Shown: one piece after another, positions 1-7,480 of the stretch | Numbering within the stretch: position 1 is the first letter of the stretch | Layout of the letters: every line of letters begins with the position of its first letter | DNA from: Paraphysomonas bandaiensis | Taxonomy: Eukaryota > Protista > Chrysophyceae | Length of the DNA: 64,000 bases | Assembly: GCA_965644295.1 (NCBI GenBank) | Contig: CBFFRP010000293.1 | Span: forward strand, 1-64,000 | Direction: 5' to 3' | Notes under the pieces: model-generated | The model's database searches: none | The model's input: the letters and a program-made list of their open reading frames with translations, nothing else | What the model was told of the DNA's origin: nothing | Translations under genes and position numbers: made by a program

Positions 1-769
1 AGGCGTCAAACTAATCACATACCACAAAAGACCAGTGAGGTTAATATGCTACAAGGGGGGCTCTAGTGGACTGTGTGTGTATGTACAGTCTGCATCTTAT
101 CTTCGGATGAAGACACACTTCACTCTCGGATTACAAGTGCCGCTGTTTTTGCTGTATGGGCAATGGAGAGATCTGATTGGTGTACTCGAGTTATACTGTT
201 TTGTATACTGTATGGAATACAGGCTGTATTGTCTATATGTATATGCTGTACAACGGTGCTGGAATACGGACTGTACTTGGTGGTGATGTGTTTGCAGAGT
301 GTGTTGTGTGACACGAGGTACATAAGTACGCAATGATGCAGTTATAGGTACATGTAGGGAATATCATTATACAGATTATACAGCTGCTGTATTATGTATT
401 ACTGCTGAACGCTGATTGGCTAGTCACTGCATTTTTGGTCTGTGGCTGTTGAGTTGGTTTAAGGCTCTTCCTATAGGCCTCTACGTAAATCTTCCAGAAG
501 GTGAATATCTCCACAAAATTGGTGAAATGTTGCTGAATTTTCTGCAGAATATTGTTCTATGTTCTCTGCTGTGTTTCTAGATAGTTCATAGAATGTAAAT
601 GGTTCTGTATGAGTTGTTTGTGTTCTATGTGCTGTCATTATTATGTTACTAGCCTTGCTGTTAACACGTTTGAGGAGGTGTCTTCAGATAAGTGCTTGAG
701 GGTGCTCAGGCAGTTGCAGGGCAACGTAATAAGCATTTTTATCTCTATATTTGCTAGTTACTTGTTACA
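1..769 (+). repeat. Gypsy 5' LTR (partial at window edge)
   Basis: Position 1 matches 6523. Ends ...TTGTTACA, the inverted counterpart of the TGTAAC start of the 3' LTR. The right boundary could alternatively be ~821. Confidence 0.85.
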
Positions 770-934
770 TTCGCACATTCATTTCATATACATAGCTGCA
801 CCCGGTGTGATACCCCGGGTTTGGTTAAAGTAAATTTACTTCCGAAAGCAGCGAACGAATCTGCAGATTTGGAATTGATATAAAAAAAGATATATATAAT
901 ATTTATTATTACACAATACTGAGGATTCGTTAAC

Positions 935-2509
935 ATGGAACACAATAATCTTCAGGAAATGCTGCAATCTTTTATGCAACAGCAACAACAAATGATACAG
1001 CAGACGTTGCATCAGAATGCACAAGTGGCGAGACAAGAGATGCAGCAAGAAATTCAAAAAATAAACCAGGGATTGCTGGGAAGGTTCGAGCATGTTGACC
1101 AACGAGTGGATGCTTTGATAGAGGAAAAGCAAAAGAGCGATCAGAAAGTGGAGACTGTGCTGGAAAACATCAATGCCAGGCTGGAAACTATGGAAACCAG
1201 AACTGCTATCCTGGAAGGGGAGAAAGAATTAACGGAACAGCAGGACAGGGCGATTACCCATCCGAGCGCATCTAGAGAACGCAAGACTATTTTCATGAAA
1301 GAGGTTGAGGAGACTACACATCTGGCGGAGAGAAGGCAAGTAGTTGTACAAATGCCTACTCCCTCTCATTCGCACATATTCCTAAATTCAATGGACCTGG
1401 CGGACTATGCTCAATTTGTGACCAAGTGGTTTGACTGGCAGGTCAAATATGGTGTGAGACTAGAGCCGGCCCTCATTGTTTCCCAAAGCATTCGAAATCT
1501 ACTAATTTTCAACAATGATATGACGGAATCTCAGTTTCAAGAACTCTCACCTGAACAATTTTGCAAGCTGATGGCTAAAGAAACTCAAGTACTGTCCAAG
1601 CTCGAGTTTTCCAACACGTTAAGGCATGCCCTAAGAGACATCAAAAAGTTAAACTGGGAAAGAGTTAGACCGAATACTCACGAGAGGTTCTTCCAAGGCA
1701 TTCTGAGGCGTAGAGACATATACTTAAGGACCTTCAGGATTATTATGGAGAACAATAGGCAGTATTGCCCAGACCTGGAAGGCAAGGACTTTGGGTTAGC
1801 CCAAGTATTCCTAAATTTGATTGATGATACTTACAACAAGACTGTCTTGGCCGAAATTCCCAAGGTCAAGGCAGGGAACTACTCCAAGGTCGAAGAGTTC
1901 CTGGAAGCTTATGTTAAGAAGGCTAAGGAGCACTATGACACGTCGAAGCGTATTAGACTGGTGCCATACAGTGGTGAAGACTATAGCATGAAAAGTCATG
2001 ACATGCGCAAGAACAAGCAGTACTCTTCACAGGAAGACAAGTACAAAGGACATGAGACAAAAACGTATCCGATGACCAGTGGGGAAGCTAAGCCTTTGCA
2101 CCAGATAAATGACTTCAGTGATGATGAAGATCAGGAGCCACGGGAATCCAGAAATGCAGAGCCAGACTCAGATGACGACTCTGACTATGAGGAAGATCCA
2201 AAGACCACTGCAGAAGGTCATGACACGAATCAGCGCTACGAGGACAAAGTGGACCAGCAGACGGCAAGAGATCAGGACACAGACTACAGAAGGCTACAAG
2301 CCATAGAGGCAACTGCTACTGGGTTGGGATGTGTCAATTTCGCCTTGTATGGGAAGTGCTTTAGAGGAGACCAGTGCAAATATGCCGGAAGTCACAATGA
2401 GAAGTGTGCAAAGGACTGCAGACAGTGGATGATGAAGAAGTTGGCGACGATGGAAAGAGATGGTCCGGGACCTCCTAAGATAATGAAGCGTGATCCAACG
2501 AAATCTTGA
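935..2509 (+). CDS. gag: Gag-like protein (N-terminal Q-rich coiled coil, C-terminal CCCH-type zinc finger)
   Basis: 524-aa ORF between the 5' LTR and pol; contains CVNFALYGKCFRGDQCKYAGSH; ends in TGA in frame with pol. Confidence 0.85.
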   Translation: MEHNNLQEMLQSFMQQQQQMIQQTLHQNAQVARQEMQQEIQKINQGLLGRFEHVDQRVDALIEEKQKSDQKVETVLENINARLETMETRTAILEGEKELTEQQDRAITHPSASRERKTIFMKEVEETTHLAERRQVVVQMPTPSHSHIFLNSMDLADYAQFVTKWFDWQVKYGVRLEPALIVSQSIRNLLIFNNDMTESQFQELSPEQFCKLMAKETQVLSKLEFSNTLRHALRDIKKLNWERVRPNTHERFFQGILRRRDIYLRTFRIIMENNRQYCPDLEGKDFGLAQVFLNLIDDTYNKTVLAEIPKVKAGNYSKVEEFLEAYVKKAKEHYDTSKRIRLVPYSGEDYSMKSHDMRKNKQYSSQEDKYKGHETKTYPMTSGEAKPLHQINDFSDDEDQEPRESRNAEPDSDDDSDYEEDPKTTAEGHDTNQRYEDKVDQQTARDQDTDYRRLQAIEATATGLGCVNFALYGKCFRGDQCKYAGSHNEKCAKDCRQWMMKKLATMERDGPGPPKIMKRDPTKS

Positions 2510-5500
2510 CTACTGCAGGGTCTTTCTGGGCCCCCTGTTGTCAGTGAAACAATAAGCTCACACAGCAGGAAGGCTTGCAGAAAGGCCCTGGAGCGAAGTT
2601 TCCTGCAGGCATGCGGCATAGGCAGGAGACTATGGACTGCCGCACACACTAAAGCGAGGATTGAAGTAGTAGATAGGAAGAACGTGGAAATAAGAAGAGA
2701 CGTAGAGACATCAGTACTGTTCGACACGGGAGCCCTCTGTTCGAACTACATCAGCATAAGGAAGTTTAGAGATATCGAGAAACACATGCATACTAAGGAC
2801 ATAATACACAAGAGAACAAAAGTCGGATTAGCAGACAATAAGACAGTGGCATGGAGTGACATCATGGTGAGACTTACCTTGAAGTTCGAGGATCGTTCAC
2901 TGAGCGCGGTTTCATGCAAATACTCTGGAGAATTTATTGTGTTGGACATGAAAGATAATGAGATCATAATTGGGTTACCTGCGATACTAGGGGACTTGTG
3001 GGACTTCTTTTGCTACAGTCTAAAAGGCAATGCAGAAAGAAAGATTAGAACGAGCGTGCCAGATGCGGAGGAGGAGATGTTGCAGTTCTTGGCATCCATG
3101 GACAACGTAGTGCATCCCTGGTCAAATAGTATGGAGGGAGAGCCACCGGAAGAAGAAATGTCTCCGTTGCCAGTGCAGTTTGGTGAGGTGATCAAGTTTT
3201 TGGGAAAAAGCAGAGAAGAAGCCATTCAGGAATTCAAGGATTTGATGCCCGAGCATATAGCTGAAGATTTTGACAAAGCAACACCTGTTCGAGAACTGTT
3301 ACTAAATGAAGGTTTGAAAGTTTTTGTACCAGAGACATGGACTGGTATCAGAGGTGTTGAACCATTAAAACTCACCTTCAAAGACACTTTACCTCAGCGA
3401 CTCAAGCCCAAAGCCAGACCCATAAACCCAAGACTCTGGGAGGCAGCAGAAAAGGAATTTTTGAGACTGCGTGGATACATGTACGAGAAGAGTAGGTCAC
3501 CATGGGCGTCTTGCTTGGTTGTGGCTCCCAAGGCTACGAAGCCGTTCATCAGGTTCTGTGGTGATTACGTAGAGATCAACAAGCATATTCACATTGGTAA
3601 CTACACTATACCTAATATTAGGCACCAGTTGGATCGTATCATGGGGTACAAGGTATTTTTAGACATAGATCTCACAAATGCCTTCCACCAAATCCCATTA
3701 CATGAAGAGACGGCGGAGAAGCTATCCATTCAAACTCCTTGGGGTCAATATCAACCACGATTCATGCCTGAGGGAATAGGTCCTGCTACTGGCGTTTTAC
3801 AAGAGACTGTCAATGCATTGTTTTCAGACTTACCGTGGGCCATAGTGATATTCGACAACATTTTGCTTCTGGCGATGGATTACCAAGAGGCATACGAGAG
3901 ACTGAAAATCTTTATCGAGAGATGCATACAACACAATGTTGTTCTCAAGTTTGCAAAGAGCTGGCTAGGTTTTGGAGAAGTCAAGTTCTTTGGCTATAGA
4001 TGTAAGCACCAGAGCTTTGAGTTGACAGAGGATAGAAAGGCTGCATTACTTGAGATACCTTTTCCAGAATCCGGGAACAGATCCAAGAAAATCAGATCAT
4101 TATTAGGATGTGGAGTTTTCTTTGCACCTTTTGTGAAAAATTACAGTGAGAAAGTTAGACATTTGACAGATCTTACGAAACCTGAATTCGACTGGTCAGA
4201 TGAGTCAAAGTGGGAGCACGACTATAGACAGGAATTCGAAGATTTCAAGAAGGATTTGCAAGAGGCATGTGCACTTCATTACCCAGATTACGAGCTGCCA
4301 TGGGTGATAAGAACTGATGCGAGTGAGATAGGTGTTGGCGGAGTCCTCATTCAAATCAAGACACATGCAGACGGTTCAAAGGAGGAGCAAATTATAGCGC
4401 TGATCTCCAAAAGATTCTCTAAGCAAGCACAGAAGTGGGATACTATTGAGCAGGAGGGATTTGCAATCTACTATGTGGTCAAGAGACTGGCGTATTATCT
4501 AATCGGGAAGGAGTTTTTGTTGGAGACGGATCATAACAACCTGAGATGGATAGAAGCGTCAGAAGTACCCAAGATTATACGATGGAGAATTTACCTGCAG
4601 TCATTTGTGTTTAAGGTGAGACATATCCCTGGAAAAGAAAATGTACTGGCCGATACACTCTCCAGACTCCATCTATGTGTTGCTGAAGAGGACGAGCATG
4701 AAGATTGTCATACAGCGGAAGGGCTATGCCACCTGTGTAATGAAGATGACGAATTTGAGGAGGAGGAGTTAGAATATGAACAGCGCATGAGTACCTTATG
4801 CAATATGTTTGATGAGGAAGAGGTGCTAGGAGAGGAGATCAAACCCACCCCTAACCATTTGCAGCTCACACCAACGGAGTGTTTAGATCAGGTTCACAAT
4901 GCCCAAGTCGGACACTGGGGAGAGCGCGAGACCTGGAGGAGACTGAACAGGGATTTCCCTGGGCATGGCATATCCCAGCGACAAGTTAAGGACTATATAG
5001 ACCGATGCGCAAATTGCCAGAAGTCCAGGAGGGAGATGAAAACTCGGCTGATCCCTGTGCAGAGACACTTGAAACCTCCAACACACAGGACCGCAATCGG
5101 TATAGATGCATTAGCCATTACACCCCACGGCCGCAATGGAGAGACACACATTAACGTCATTGTGAATTTGTTTACGGAGCTAGCGTTTTTGAACCCAGTG
5201 AAAGGATGCTCAGCAAAGACCCTGGCGGATTCAGTCTGGAAGTATTGGGCGAATTTCGGTTTTACTGACATGATCATATCTGATTTGGGACCAGATTTAA
5301 ATTCAGCGTTATTCAAGGAATTGACCGATCTGGTGGGAGTTCGGCATGTCTTCAGCATTGCGAACAAACATGTCAATGGTTGCGAGCGGGTGAATAAGGA
5401 AGTGGGACGACACTTGCGAGCATTGGTATATGACACCAGAGAGAAGGATGTTTTTGACGACCCAACCTTCATCCCCAGCGTCCAAATCATTCTCAACACA

Positions 5501-6487
5501 CACAGATCAGCAGAGACAAACTATACTCCATTTGAGCTGACTTTTGGGACACCAGACTCAGTCTATAGTGATCTCGCGAAGAAATTCGAGCGTGTCCCTG
5601 AGCACCTATACCTCCAGAAGATGCACGAGAACCTTCACCAGTTACGCAACGCATCTAGACAATACCAAGAGACTCTGATCAAGAAGAGAGTGGAGGGTCC
5701 TAACCAGAGGATGGGTCCCCAGAACAAATTCCAGAAAGGGGATCTGGTCTTGTACGACCCAGGAGTGAGACCGGTGCCGAAGCTGTCTACAAAACGCAAG
5801 GGACCTTTCGAGGTAGTTCACCAGTACAAGAATGACGTAGACTGCAGAAATGTATTAACAGGGGCTATTCACAAATATTCTGTAACTGACCTAGAGTACT
5901 TTGTGGGTTCAAAGGAGGATGCCGTGGAAGCTGCCATCCGAGATCAAGAGCAATTCAGAGTCAAGGTGATTCATGGGTACAAGGGAGATTCCAACCACCG
6001 TACTAGCATGACATTCATTGTGGAGTATGCAGATGGGGACATACTGGAAGTACCATGGAGTAGAGATCTATTCGATTGTCAGGCATATGAAGATTTCTGT
6101 AAATCTAGGAAGTACTTACATCACCTCATCCTGGATCAGAATCAGGTCACTCCTTTCAAGACTCAGCTCAGGAGGGCAGACGTCACAGCAGTGCAAGTAG
6201 GTGATAGAGTGTATGTGGATCTTCGTTTCTTTGGGGATCAGTGGTATCAGAGCTTGGACCTTCCAGACTTTTCTACAAAATCGTATGTGGTGGTCTTCGA
6301 ATACACGCATTGGTACCACAGGACATCTAAAAAGAAGATTAGCGCTCGTTTTCTGCTTAATGGTGCTACTTACGCCCTCGATAATTATCTTGTGTTTGCG
6401 TGGGGCTCAGTCAAGACCTTCGATGAGACCTACATGGTGCTGGTGGATGCAGACATAGCCAAAAGGTATCCCCGCATAGTTGAATAG
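2510..6487 (+). CDS. pol: Pol polyprotein (protease, RT, RNase H, integrase, chromodomain), probably expressed by readthrough of the gag UGA
   Basis: Motifs LFDTGA (PR); FLDIDLTNAFHQ and IFDN (RT); TDAS/TDH/ADTLSR (RH); H-x5-H...C-x2-C, GIDAL/ISDLG/NGCER and GPF (IN); chromodomain-like FRVKVI...FIVEY...VPW. The frame is open from 2510; the ORF track start at 2684 is a GTG. Confidence 0.95.
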   Translation, partial: LLQGLSGPPVVSETISSHSRKACRKALERSFLQACGIGRRLWTAAHTKARIEVVDRKNVEIRRDVETSVLFDTGALCSNYISIRKFRDIEKHMHTKDIIHKRTKVGLADNKTVAWSDIMVRLTLKFEDRSLSAVSCKYSGEFIVLDMKDNEIIIGLPAILGDLWDFFCYSLKGNAERKIRTSVPDAEEEMLQFLASMDNVVHPWSNSMEGEPPEEEMSPLPVQFGEVIKFLGKSREEAIQEFKDLMPEHIAEDFDKATPVRELLLNEGLKVFVPETWTGIRGVEPLKLTFKDTLPQRLKPKARPINPRLWEAAEKEFLRLRGYMYEKSRSPWASCLVVAPKATKPFIRFCGDYVEINKHIHIGNYTIPNIRHQLDRIMGYKVFLDIDLTNAFHQIPLHEETAEKLSIQTPWGQYQPRFMPEGIGPATGVLQETVNALFSDLPWAIVIFDNILLLAMDYQEAYERLKIFIERCIQHNVVLKFAKSWLGFGEVKFFGYRCKHQSFELTEDRKAALLEIPFPESGNRSKKIRSLLGCGVFFAPFVKNYSEKVRHLTDLTKPEFDWSDESKWEHDYRQEFEDFKKDLQEACALHYPDYELPWVIRTDASEIGVGGVLIQIKTHADGSKEEQIIALISKRFSKQAQKWDTIEQEGFAIYYVVKRLAYYLIGKEFLLETDHNNLRWIEASEVPKIIRWRIYLQSFVFKVRHIPGKENVLADTLSRLHLCVAEEDEHEDCHTAEGLCHLCNEDDEFEEEELEYEQRMSTLCNMFDEEEVLGEEIKPTPNHLQLTPTECLDQVHNAQVGHWGERETWRRLNRDFPGHGISQRQVKDYIDRCANCQKSRREMKTRLIPVQRHLKPPTHRTAIGIDALAITPHGRNGETHINVIVNLFTELAFLNPVKGCSAKTLADSVWKYWANFGFTDMIISDLGPDLNSALFKELTDLVGVRHVFSIANKHVNGCERVNKEVGRHLRALVYDTREKDVFDDPTFIPSVQIILNTHRSAETNYTPFELTFGTPDSVYSDLAKKFERVPEHLYLQKMHENLHQLRNASRQYQETLIKKRVEGPNQRMGPQNKFQKGDLVLYDPGVRPVPKLSTKRKGPFEVVHQYKNDVDCRNVLTGAIHKYSVTDLEYFVGSKEDAVEAAIRDQEQFRVKVIHGYKGDSNHRTSMTFIVEYADGDILEVPWSRDLFDCQAYEDFCKSRKYLHHLILDQNQVTPFKTQLRRADVTAVQVGDRVYVDLRFFGDQWYQSLDLPDFSTKSYVVVFEYTHWYHRTSKKKISARFLLNGATYALDNYLVFAWGSVKTFDETYMVLVDADIAKRYPRIVE

Positions 6488-6493
6488 CATAAC

Positions 6494-6512
6494 AGAGAGG
6501 GGGAGGGGGCAG
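6494..6512 (+). promoter_or_regulatory. Polypurine tract of the Gypsy element
   Basis: AGAGAGGGGGAGGGGGCAG immediately before TGTAAC of the 3' LTR. Confidence 0.9.
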
Positions 6513-7258
6513 TGTAACGCCGAGGCGTCAAACTAATCACATACCACAAGACCAGTGAGGTTAATATGCTACAAGGGGGGCTCTAGTGGACTGTGTGTGT
6601 ATGTACAGTCTGCATCTTATCTTCGGATGAAGACACACTTCACTCTCGGATTACAAGTGCCGCTGTTTTTGCTGTATGGGCAATGGAGAGATCTGATTGG
6701 TGTACTCGGGTTATACTGTTTTGTATACTGTATGGAATACAGGCTGTATTGTCTATATGTATATGCTGTATAACGGTGCTGGAATACGGACTGTACTTGG
6801 TGGTGATGTGTTTGCAGAGTGTGTTGTGTGACACGAGGTACATAAGTACGCAATGATGCAGTTATAGGTACATGTAGGGACTATTACTATACAGCTGCTG
6901 TATTATGTATTGCTGCTGAACGCTGATTGGCTAGTCACTGCATTTTTGGTCTGTGGCTGTTGAGTTGGTTTAAGGCTCTTCCTATAGGCCTCTACGTGAA
7001 TCTTCCAGAAGGTGGATATCTCCACAAAATTGGCGAAATGTTGCTGAATTTTCTGCAGAATATTGTTCTTTGTTCTCTGCTGTGTTTCTAGATAGTTCAT
7101 AGAATTAAAATGGTTCTGTATGAGTTGTTTGTCTTCTATGTGCTGTCATTATTATGTTACTAGCCTTGCTGTTCAGATAAGTGCTTGAGGGTGCTCAGGC
7201 AGTTGCAGGGCATAGTAATAAGCATATTTATCTCTACATTATCTATTTTCTTGTTACA
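6513..7258 (+). repeat. Gypsy 3' LTR
   Basis: TGTAAC...GTTACA; direct repeat of 1-769. Shared sequence continues to 7310. Confidence 0.85.
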
Positions 7259-7480
7259 TTCGCACATTCATTTCATATACATAGCTGCACCCGGTGTGAT
7301 ACCCCGGGTTAGGTCAAAACAGAACTAAAGTTCCATCAAAGGTAAAGCACCTTGGGTTTAACTATTAATCATCTATTCGTCTTGGTTTTTCATCAGGATT
7401 TGGGGTGTTTGGAGAATCTATATATGGTCTCCATTAGCGGCTGGGAGTTGCATTAGAAGCTGTGTGTTATACTCTGGTGA

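Follow-up and report, generated by a model that had tools for sequence, protein, structure and literature searches.

Readthrough of an in-frame stop separating gag from pol is firmly documented for gammaretroviruses and for a small number of retrotransposons in fungi. In murine leukaemia virus (MuLV), a gammaretrovirus, an in-frame UAG separates the two genes, and a compact pseudoknot about 8 nt downstream sets the ratio of Gag to Gag-Pol. Stem-loop stimulators of readthrough at UGA-CUA and UGA-CGG, in turn, are known mainly from RNA viruses. Here we describe a young, transcribed long terminal repeat (LTR) retrotransposon of Ty3/gypsy type (Metaviridae type) in the chrysophyte Paraphysomonas bandaiensis. 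It lies at the start of a 64,000-nt stretch of DNA (assembly GCA_965644295.1, contig CBFFRP010000293.1, positions 1 to 64,000 of the forward strand), the whole of which is called the window below. Its gag and pol are divided by a single UGA with a large hairpin behind it, and most probably joined by programmed readthrough.

Several described systems resemble parts of this arrangement. UGA-CUA and UGA-CGG are consensus readthrough contexts that go together with an extended 3' stem-loop, the alphavirus, tobravirus and furovirus type (Firth et al. 2011, PMC3159437), and in alphaviruses readthrough of the UGA increases by as much as 10-fold with the 3' stem (PMC3159437). The selenocysteine redefinition element of SEPN1, a hairpin 6 nt past a UGA, stimulates readthrough even without a selenocysteine insertion sequence (SECIS) (PMC3159437). 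Among retrotransposons, the passages cited for the fission-yeast Ty3/gypsy elements Tj1, Tcry1 and Tosmo1-3 describe gag and pol in one frame with GAA-UGA-CU(A/G) between them and a pol without AUG, and report the 8-nt motif GAA-UGA-CU as strictly conserved (PMC4600332, PMC10085805). For Tj1, the passage cited gives the gag stop as necessary for transposition, activity being lost when the stop is removed (PMC4600332). The junction of the Candida albicans Ty1/copia element Tca2 contains an internal promoter and drove no readthrough in a yeast reporter (PMC2194720).

A first-pass annotation of the window had placed gag (from 935) and pol in the same frame, interrupted only by a TGA followed by CTA and without an ATG before the protease DTG motif, and the open reading frames (ORFs) agree on each point. 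Frame 0 runs from gag through pol for 1851 codons, in which the UGA is the only stop before the terminal TAG (see the table); its sense context is UCU-UGA-CUA, and the first in-frame ATG beyond it, at 2786, lies downstream of the DTG at 2723. The stem arms named in that annotation pair as described (2516-2528 with 2578-2590, GGCC with GGCU, 2534-2541 with 2562-2569, and GUGA with UCAC). They form a 13-bp basal stem followed by stems of 4, 8 and 4 bp and a 10-nt apical loop, and the stem begins exactly 6 nt past the stop. The folding check that it suggested gave a minimum free energy (MFE) of -46.6 kcal/mol for 2507-2600 (z = -5.28), which 0 of 200 dinucleotide shuffles equalled, and the hairpin alone folds at -40.8 kcal/mol. 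Moreover, the 85-nt segment that follows the stop is the global MFE minimum of gag-pol (-45.4 kcal/mol against a mean of -15.1, standard deviation 4.1), and none of 739 distant segments of that length is equally stable. Of the parts of a programmed readthrough cassette, the element has a single in-frame stop, a downstream ORF without a start, C at +4 and a stable 3' structure.

We consider it probable that hairpin-stimulated, programmed readthrough of this UGA sets the Gag:Gag-Pol ratio and that Pol is made only as a Gag-Pol fusion. Most ribosomes would terminate at the UGA and release Gag, while a minority, using a near-cognate tRNA to decode it, would go on in the same frame through protease, reverse transcriptase (RT), RNase H and integrase, so that the split between termination and readthrough would set a low ratio of Gag-Pol to Gag. 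Two cis elements may favour readthrough, the 3' context (C at +4, here within CUA) and the hairpin, which, starting 6 nt after the stop, would stand at the mRNA entrance of the ribosome when the UGA is in the A site. What we infer about the occurrence and efficiency of readthrough, the amino acid inserted and stimulation by the hairpin comes from the sequence, from comparison and from precedent. The first-pass annotation had likewise proposed that readthrough sets the Gag:Pol ratio, and this proposal is supported by the conservation of the stop, its link to a hairpin and the unspliced RNA across the site.

Mapping related elements in the host genome (62.5 Mb in 669 contigs), we found that the stop is conserved from close copies to diverged families. 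The family of the window element, family A, has seven genomic copies of 90-100% identity, and all seven keep both TGA-CTA and the stem. A pol search returned at least 76 related copies, with pol frames typically of about 1313-1333 codons, and gag-pol junctions were inspected in families A to H, eight in all, whose pol is 53-60% identical to that of the window element. In all eight, gag and pol share one frame with one UGA at the end of gag. The stop reads UGA-CUA in family A, UGA-CUG in B, UGA-CAA in C, UGA-GGU in D, UGA-CUA-G in E, UGA-UGG in F and G, and UGA-GAU in H. One degenerate copy of family B has UAA in place of UGA, and in family C an AUG stands two codons past the stop.

The same arrangement extends to other samples. 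Public proteins include 27 homologues of gag by sequence search. Of the encoding contigs, 11 from five different samples were inspected, and each of the 11 shows one in-frame TGA followed by an open pol; three of these external elements (L066, L068 and L070) carry GAA-UGA-CU, the 8-nt motif of the fission-yeast elements. A metagenome scan with a pol alignment added 80 loci of 39-56% pol identity in two layouts, either a single gag-pol ORF or a frame interrupted by a stop 45-90 codons ahead of the protease, the stop being TGA in every stop-bearing locus. Pooling the junctions gave 50 distinct stop-bearing relatives, with UGA in 50 of 50; position +4 holds C in 39 of them, U in another 9 and G in the other 2, and the next codon is CGG in 14, CUA in 9 and CUG in 4. 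A nonsense mutation private to this copy, which the first-pass annotation had named as the finding that would count against it, is therefore not what the stop represents. In the pol tree, the window element falls in a clade of 26 rows, all with UGA, and over the whole tree the layout switches between single ORF and UGA-split at least five times on well-supported branches. Conservation extends to peptide motifs encoded in frame immediately past the stop: V-x-x-C-D-G-x-D-D-C is common to families D, F and H, and W-N-D-R-D-L ... L-A-N-x-F-G to six external elements, in neither case with an AUG. Such conservation indicates that the codons following the stop are translated in frame 0.

Strong structure accompanies the stop in several lineages whose hairpin sequences are mutually unrelated, with spacers between stop and hairpin mostly of 6-8 nt. 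The hairpin of family B (6-nt spacer, -28.9 kcal/mol) is equalled by 0 of 595 distant segments of its element and that of the external element L074 (6-nt spacer, -27.2 kcal/mol) by 0 of 591; L066 and L070 share one hairpin, equalled in L066 by 1 of 600 segments, and the weaker hairpin of family C is equalled by 25 of 733. The segment after the stop is the top structure of the whole element in L074 as well as in families A and B. Among 35 metagenome elements that carry an in-frame UGA, it ranks in the top 1% of the element's own segments in 22. A structure control comprised 29 distinct UGA elements and 19 single-ORF relatives: the most stable 85-nt segment overlaps the junction in 17 of the former, while just one of the latter has it within 150 nt of the homologous point (Fisher p = 0.0002). 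In one metagenome relative, L113, the gag contains an 85-nt segment of -65.5 kcal/mol about 1068 nt upstream of the gag stop, in stability far above all other structure of that element.

A freshwater clade of 12 distinct elements has UGA-CGG (CUG in one) followed after 6-7 nt by a hairpin of 9-12 bp. At each of nine stem positions, two to four Watson-Crick or wobble pair types occur, a pattern of compensatory change. These pairs were counted with a structure-anchored script, MAFFT having misaligned three of the hairpins, and the changes belong to hairpins different from that of the window. Stem covariation, which the first-pass annotation had proposed as a test of the hairpin, is thus found in the freshwater clade's own hairpins and not in family A, where variation is scant. 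Five members of the UGA-CGG clade (L127, L128, L129, L136 and L146) also have a second large GC-rich hairpin, placed about 75 nt upstream and ending a few nucleotides before the UGA, besides the one 7 nt beyond it, and the upstream and downstream hairpins fold jointly at -58 to -66 kcal/mol over 120 nt.

The element was found in sequencing runs from nine studies, polyA marine metatranscriptomes among them. PolyA RNA contigs span the stop and hairpin without a joint, over 2387-2557 with 0 differences and over 2454-2747, and DNA-like runs do likewise. No sense-strand GT-AG joint was seen anywhere in gag-pol in the contigs, which came from two polyA metatranscriptome runs and two other runs. Production of pol from a spliced or subgenomic RNA, the other outcome that the first-pass annotation had set against its reading, finds no support here, as RNA contigs cross the stop and no such joint was seen in gag-pol.

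Contigs from RNA runs also skip at least nine short segments of 49-91 nt, which on the minus strand have GT(A/G)AG-like donors and AG ends; for two of the skips (4538|4593 and 5841|5891) a single contig shows the join cleanly. Splicing at many tiny introns thus seems to take place in antisense transcripts of the element. No long antisense ORF is made by this splicing, the longest stop-free stretch staying at 175 codons. Two further skips are not of GT-AG type, one of 3026 nt (1153 to 4180), in an RNA run and with 10 foreign letters at the skip, and one of 211 nt (876 to 1088) in DNA-like runs. Copies with internal deletions seem a likelier source of both than spliced RNAs.

Of the described systems, the closest to the window element are the fission-yeast Ty3/gypsy elements, the viral UGA-CUA/CGG class and MuLV, and it would work like all three. 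Like MuLV, it has an in-frame stop between gag and pol and a 3' RNA structure; unlike MuLV, its stop is UGA and its structure a simple hairpin. A gammaretrovirus-type signal, UAG with an H-type pseudoknot 8 nt downstream, was considered and rejected, the stop being UGA and the apical region (2541-2561) having shown no complementarity of at least 6 bp to the following 130 nt. With the fission-yeast elements it has in common the gene order of the superfamily, a one-frame gag and pol split by UGA-CU(A/G) and a pol without AUG, whereas its context is UCU-UGA-CUA, its host a marine protist and its pol only distantly related. The passages cited for the yeast elements do not mention a 3' hairpin (PMC4600332, PMC10085805). 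The remark in the first-pass annotation that gypsy elements more usually frameshift or use one ORF needs a correction: the arrangement is less unusual than was supposed, since the passages cited document an in-frame UGA-CU stop in fission-yeast Ty3/gypsy elements (PMC10085805, PMC4600332).

The relatives of the window element resemble the viral class in having the same stop, the same favoured next codons (CGG and CUA, as counted above) and a stable nearby stem with compensatory changes. Viral stems have spacers of 7-12 nt and often enclose loops of 100-270 nt, whereas the protist elements have a 6-7 nt spacer and a compact hairpin of 24-75 nt; unlike the alphavirus type, moreover, the window element is a DNA-integrated retrotransposon and not an RNA virus. 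Judged by sequence, it would belong with the viral class of UGA-CUA/CGG and a 3' stem, showing every sequence-level feature of that class, with a shorter spacer and a stem that is compact, not long-range. The 6-nt distance is also that of SEPN1, but SEPN1 is a selenoprotein mRNA with a SECIS in its 3' untranslated region, and a search with the Rfam SECIS models gave no match at E <= 1 in 1-7400, the 3' LTR included. Tca2 likewise has a UGA between gag and pol and a predicted 3' structure, but is copia-type.

Several observations weigh against hairpin-stimulated readthrough as the explanation. In the stem of family A there are 0 double compensatory changes, and the copies differ too little for covariation to be judged; the four one-sided changes all preserve pairing through wobble. 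Three cells are unpaired in the apical part of the C247 copy, which is 90% identical and whose apical stem, rebuilt, is slightly more stable. Families D to H and several external lineages keep the UGA without a significant hairpin, so the hairpin would be an optional enhancer and not a requirement of the strategy. In Tca2, gag-UGA-pol with a predicted pseudoknot gave no readthrough in a yeast reporter (PMC2194720), which shows that anatomy alone can mislead. RNA evidence at the level of contigs is, in addition, compatible with rare spliced or subgenomic forms.

These points bear differently on the alternatives. The lineages with UGA and no hairpin would suit a model in which the short context, UGA-C or UGA-CUA, is sufficient for readthrough and the hairpin serves genomic RNA packaging or dimerisation, is a Dicer/RNAi substrate, or pauses RT. 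A microRNA-precursor-like match could be taken in the same sense, being the only hit of the hairpin to a known RNA family (Rfam mir-330, 25.6 bits, below the cut-off of 60), and it reflects the long hairpin shape only. This model is unlikely, however, since it does not account for the strong junction structure that accompanies the stop (17/29 against 1/19), and a spacer of 6-8 nt kept across unrelated hairpins is the geometry of known readthrough stimulators. Quite improbable is the synthesis of Pol without readthrough, whether by internal or non-AUG initiation, by termination and reinitiation, from an internal promoter or subgenomic RNA, or from a rare spliced mRNA. Tca2 provides a precedent for an internal promoter (PMC2194720), family C has its AUG just past the stop, and rare RNA forms fit the contig data. 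Family A, by contrast, has no in-frame AUG before the protease DTG, initiation models do not predict an invariant UGA with C at +4 in 39 of 50 relatives, the peptide just past the stop is conserved in frame in several lineages, and no sense-strand GT-AG joint was seen near the stop.

Insertion of selenocysteine at the UGA, the hairpin playing the part of the SEPN1 redefinition element, is very improbable. The host genome encodes a tRNA-Sec(UCA) (minus strand, C339:26360-26445; 69.6 bits, with ARAGORN in agreement), so that selenoproteins are probably made in this host, and the SEPN1 stem likewise begins 6 nt after its UGA (PMC3159437). On the other hand, the element lacks a SECIS match within the range searched, the CUA and CGG contexts are those of near-cognate readthrough, and many relatives have no hairpin. 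There is a negligible chance that the UGA arose as a nonsense mutation private to one dead copy, or that UGA has a sense meaning in this host: the former is ruled out by the presence of the stop in all copies, families and external relatives, and the latter by the single UGA in 1851 codons, at the gag-pol border and nowhere else in gag or pol. Programmed readthrough stimulated by the hairpin thus stays the probable explanation.

In its LTRs, gag and pol (see the table), the element has the anatomy of a Ty3/gypsy retrotransposon. The order of pol is protease-RT-RNase H-integrase, the Ty3/gypsy order, by Pfam matches and by the position of the DTG upstream of RT; the Pfam rve match in pol is weak. 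The contig starts about 10 nt inside the 5' LTR, so that the upstream flank and target-site duplication cannot be read for the window copy, and inspection after the 5' LTR revealed no tRNA-type TGG primer-binding site. The N-terminus of gag is coiled-coil-like, and near its C-terminus lies a CCCH zinc finger (about 2324-2401, residues 464-489; Pfam zf-CCCH_DUS3L, 24.4 bits, below the cut-off). Retroelement Gag proteins usually carry CCHC knuckles where the window gag has this CCCH-type finger. The catalytic motif of RT, at about 3848-3859, is I-F-D-N and not Y-x-D-D (alignment positions F448, D449 and N450); F-D-N is invariant in 18 of 18 diverged, apparently active elements that were aligned, which marks it as a trait of the clade and not as decay.

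Table. Features of the retrotransposon and segments skipped in RNA-run contigs, in window positions
Feature	Position	Strand	Remarks
5' LTR	1-829	+	aligns with 6523-7318, 97.4% identity over 796 columns
gag ORF	935-2506 (TGA 2507-2509)	+	524 aa, ATG-initiated; from the ORF list and translation
gag-pol stop UGA, proposed recoding site	2507-2509	+	sole in-frame stop between gag and pol
spacer CUACUG, 6 nt	2510-2515	+	first codon CUA, giving the UGA-CUA context
hairpin, proposed readthrough stimulator	2516-2590	+	75 nt, 29 bp
pol ORF	2510-6487	+	1325 aa plus TAG (6485-6487)
protease DTG motif	2723-2731	+	in pol
RT	~3614-4000	+	Pfam RVT_1
RNase H	~4286-4606	+	Pfam RT_RNaseH, RT_RNaseH_2
integrase zinc domain	~4877-5029	+	Pfam Integrase_H2C2
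polypurine tract	6494-6509	+	just 5' of the 3' LTR; read from the sequence
3' LTR	6513-7318	+	begins with TG; from the LTR alignment
skipped segments	1499-1550, 1631-1681, 1775-1834	minus	RNA-run contigs
skipped segments	3285-3375, 3556-3611, 4541-4594	minus	RNA-run contigs
skipped segments	4733-4794, 5842-5890, 6068-6119	minus	RNA-run contigs

Readthrough of a UGA is already known from some viruses and yeast retrotransposons, and the element reveals no new mechanism. The literature searched on retrotransposon readthrough, including a diatom retrotransposon survey, contained no UGA and hairpin arrangement in retrotransposons of stramenopiles or other protists, and recoding in this large superfamily of protist Ty3/gypsy-like elements apparently was not described before. 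The balance of the evidence tips somewhat towards UGA-C with a compact hairpin 6-8 nt downstream being a modular cassette, gained and lost repeatedly in the Ty3/gypsy-like elements of aquatic protists, its sequence freely replaced and its position kept. If so, nature would have assembled in these elements a library of eukaryotic readthrough stimulators, dozens of them independent, compact enough to be suited to reporters. For annotation, the pol of such elements should be taken neither for a pseudogene nor for a separate gene. The locus and its roughly 50 relatives combine both features, the readthrough-type gag-pol and the stem-loop stimulator, in marine and freshwater protist retrotransposons, and this clade-wide pattern is the most interesting part of the finding. 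Importantly, a strict UGA, recurring virus-like CUA and CGG codons and unrelated hairpins at 6-8 nt offer comparative evidence on how readthrough signals are built and rebuilt.

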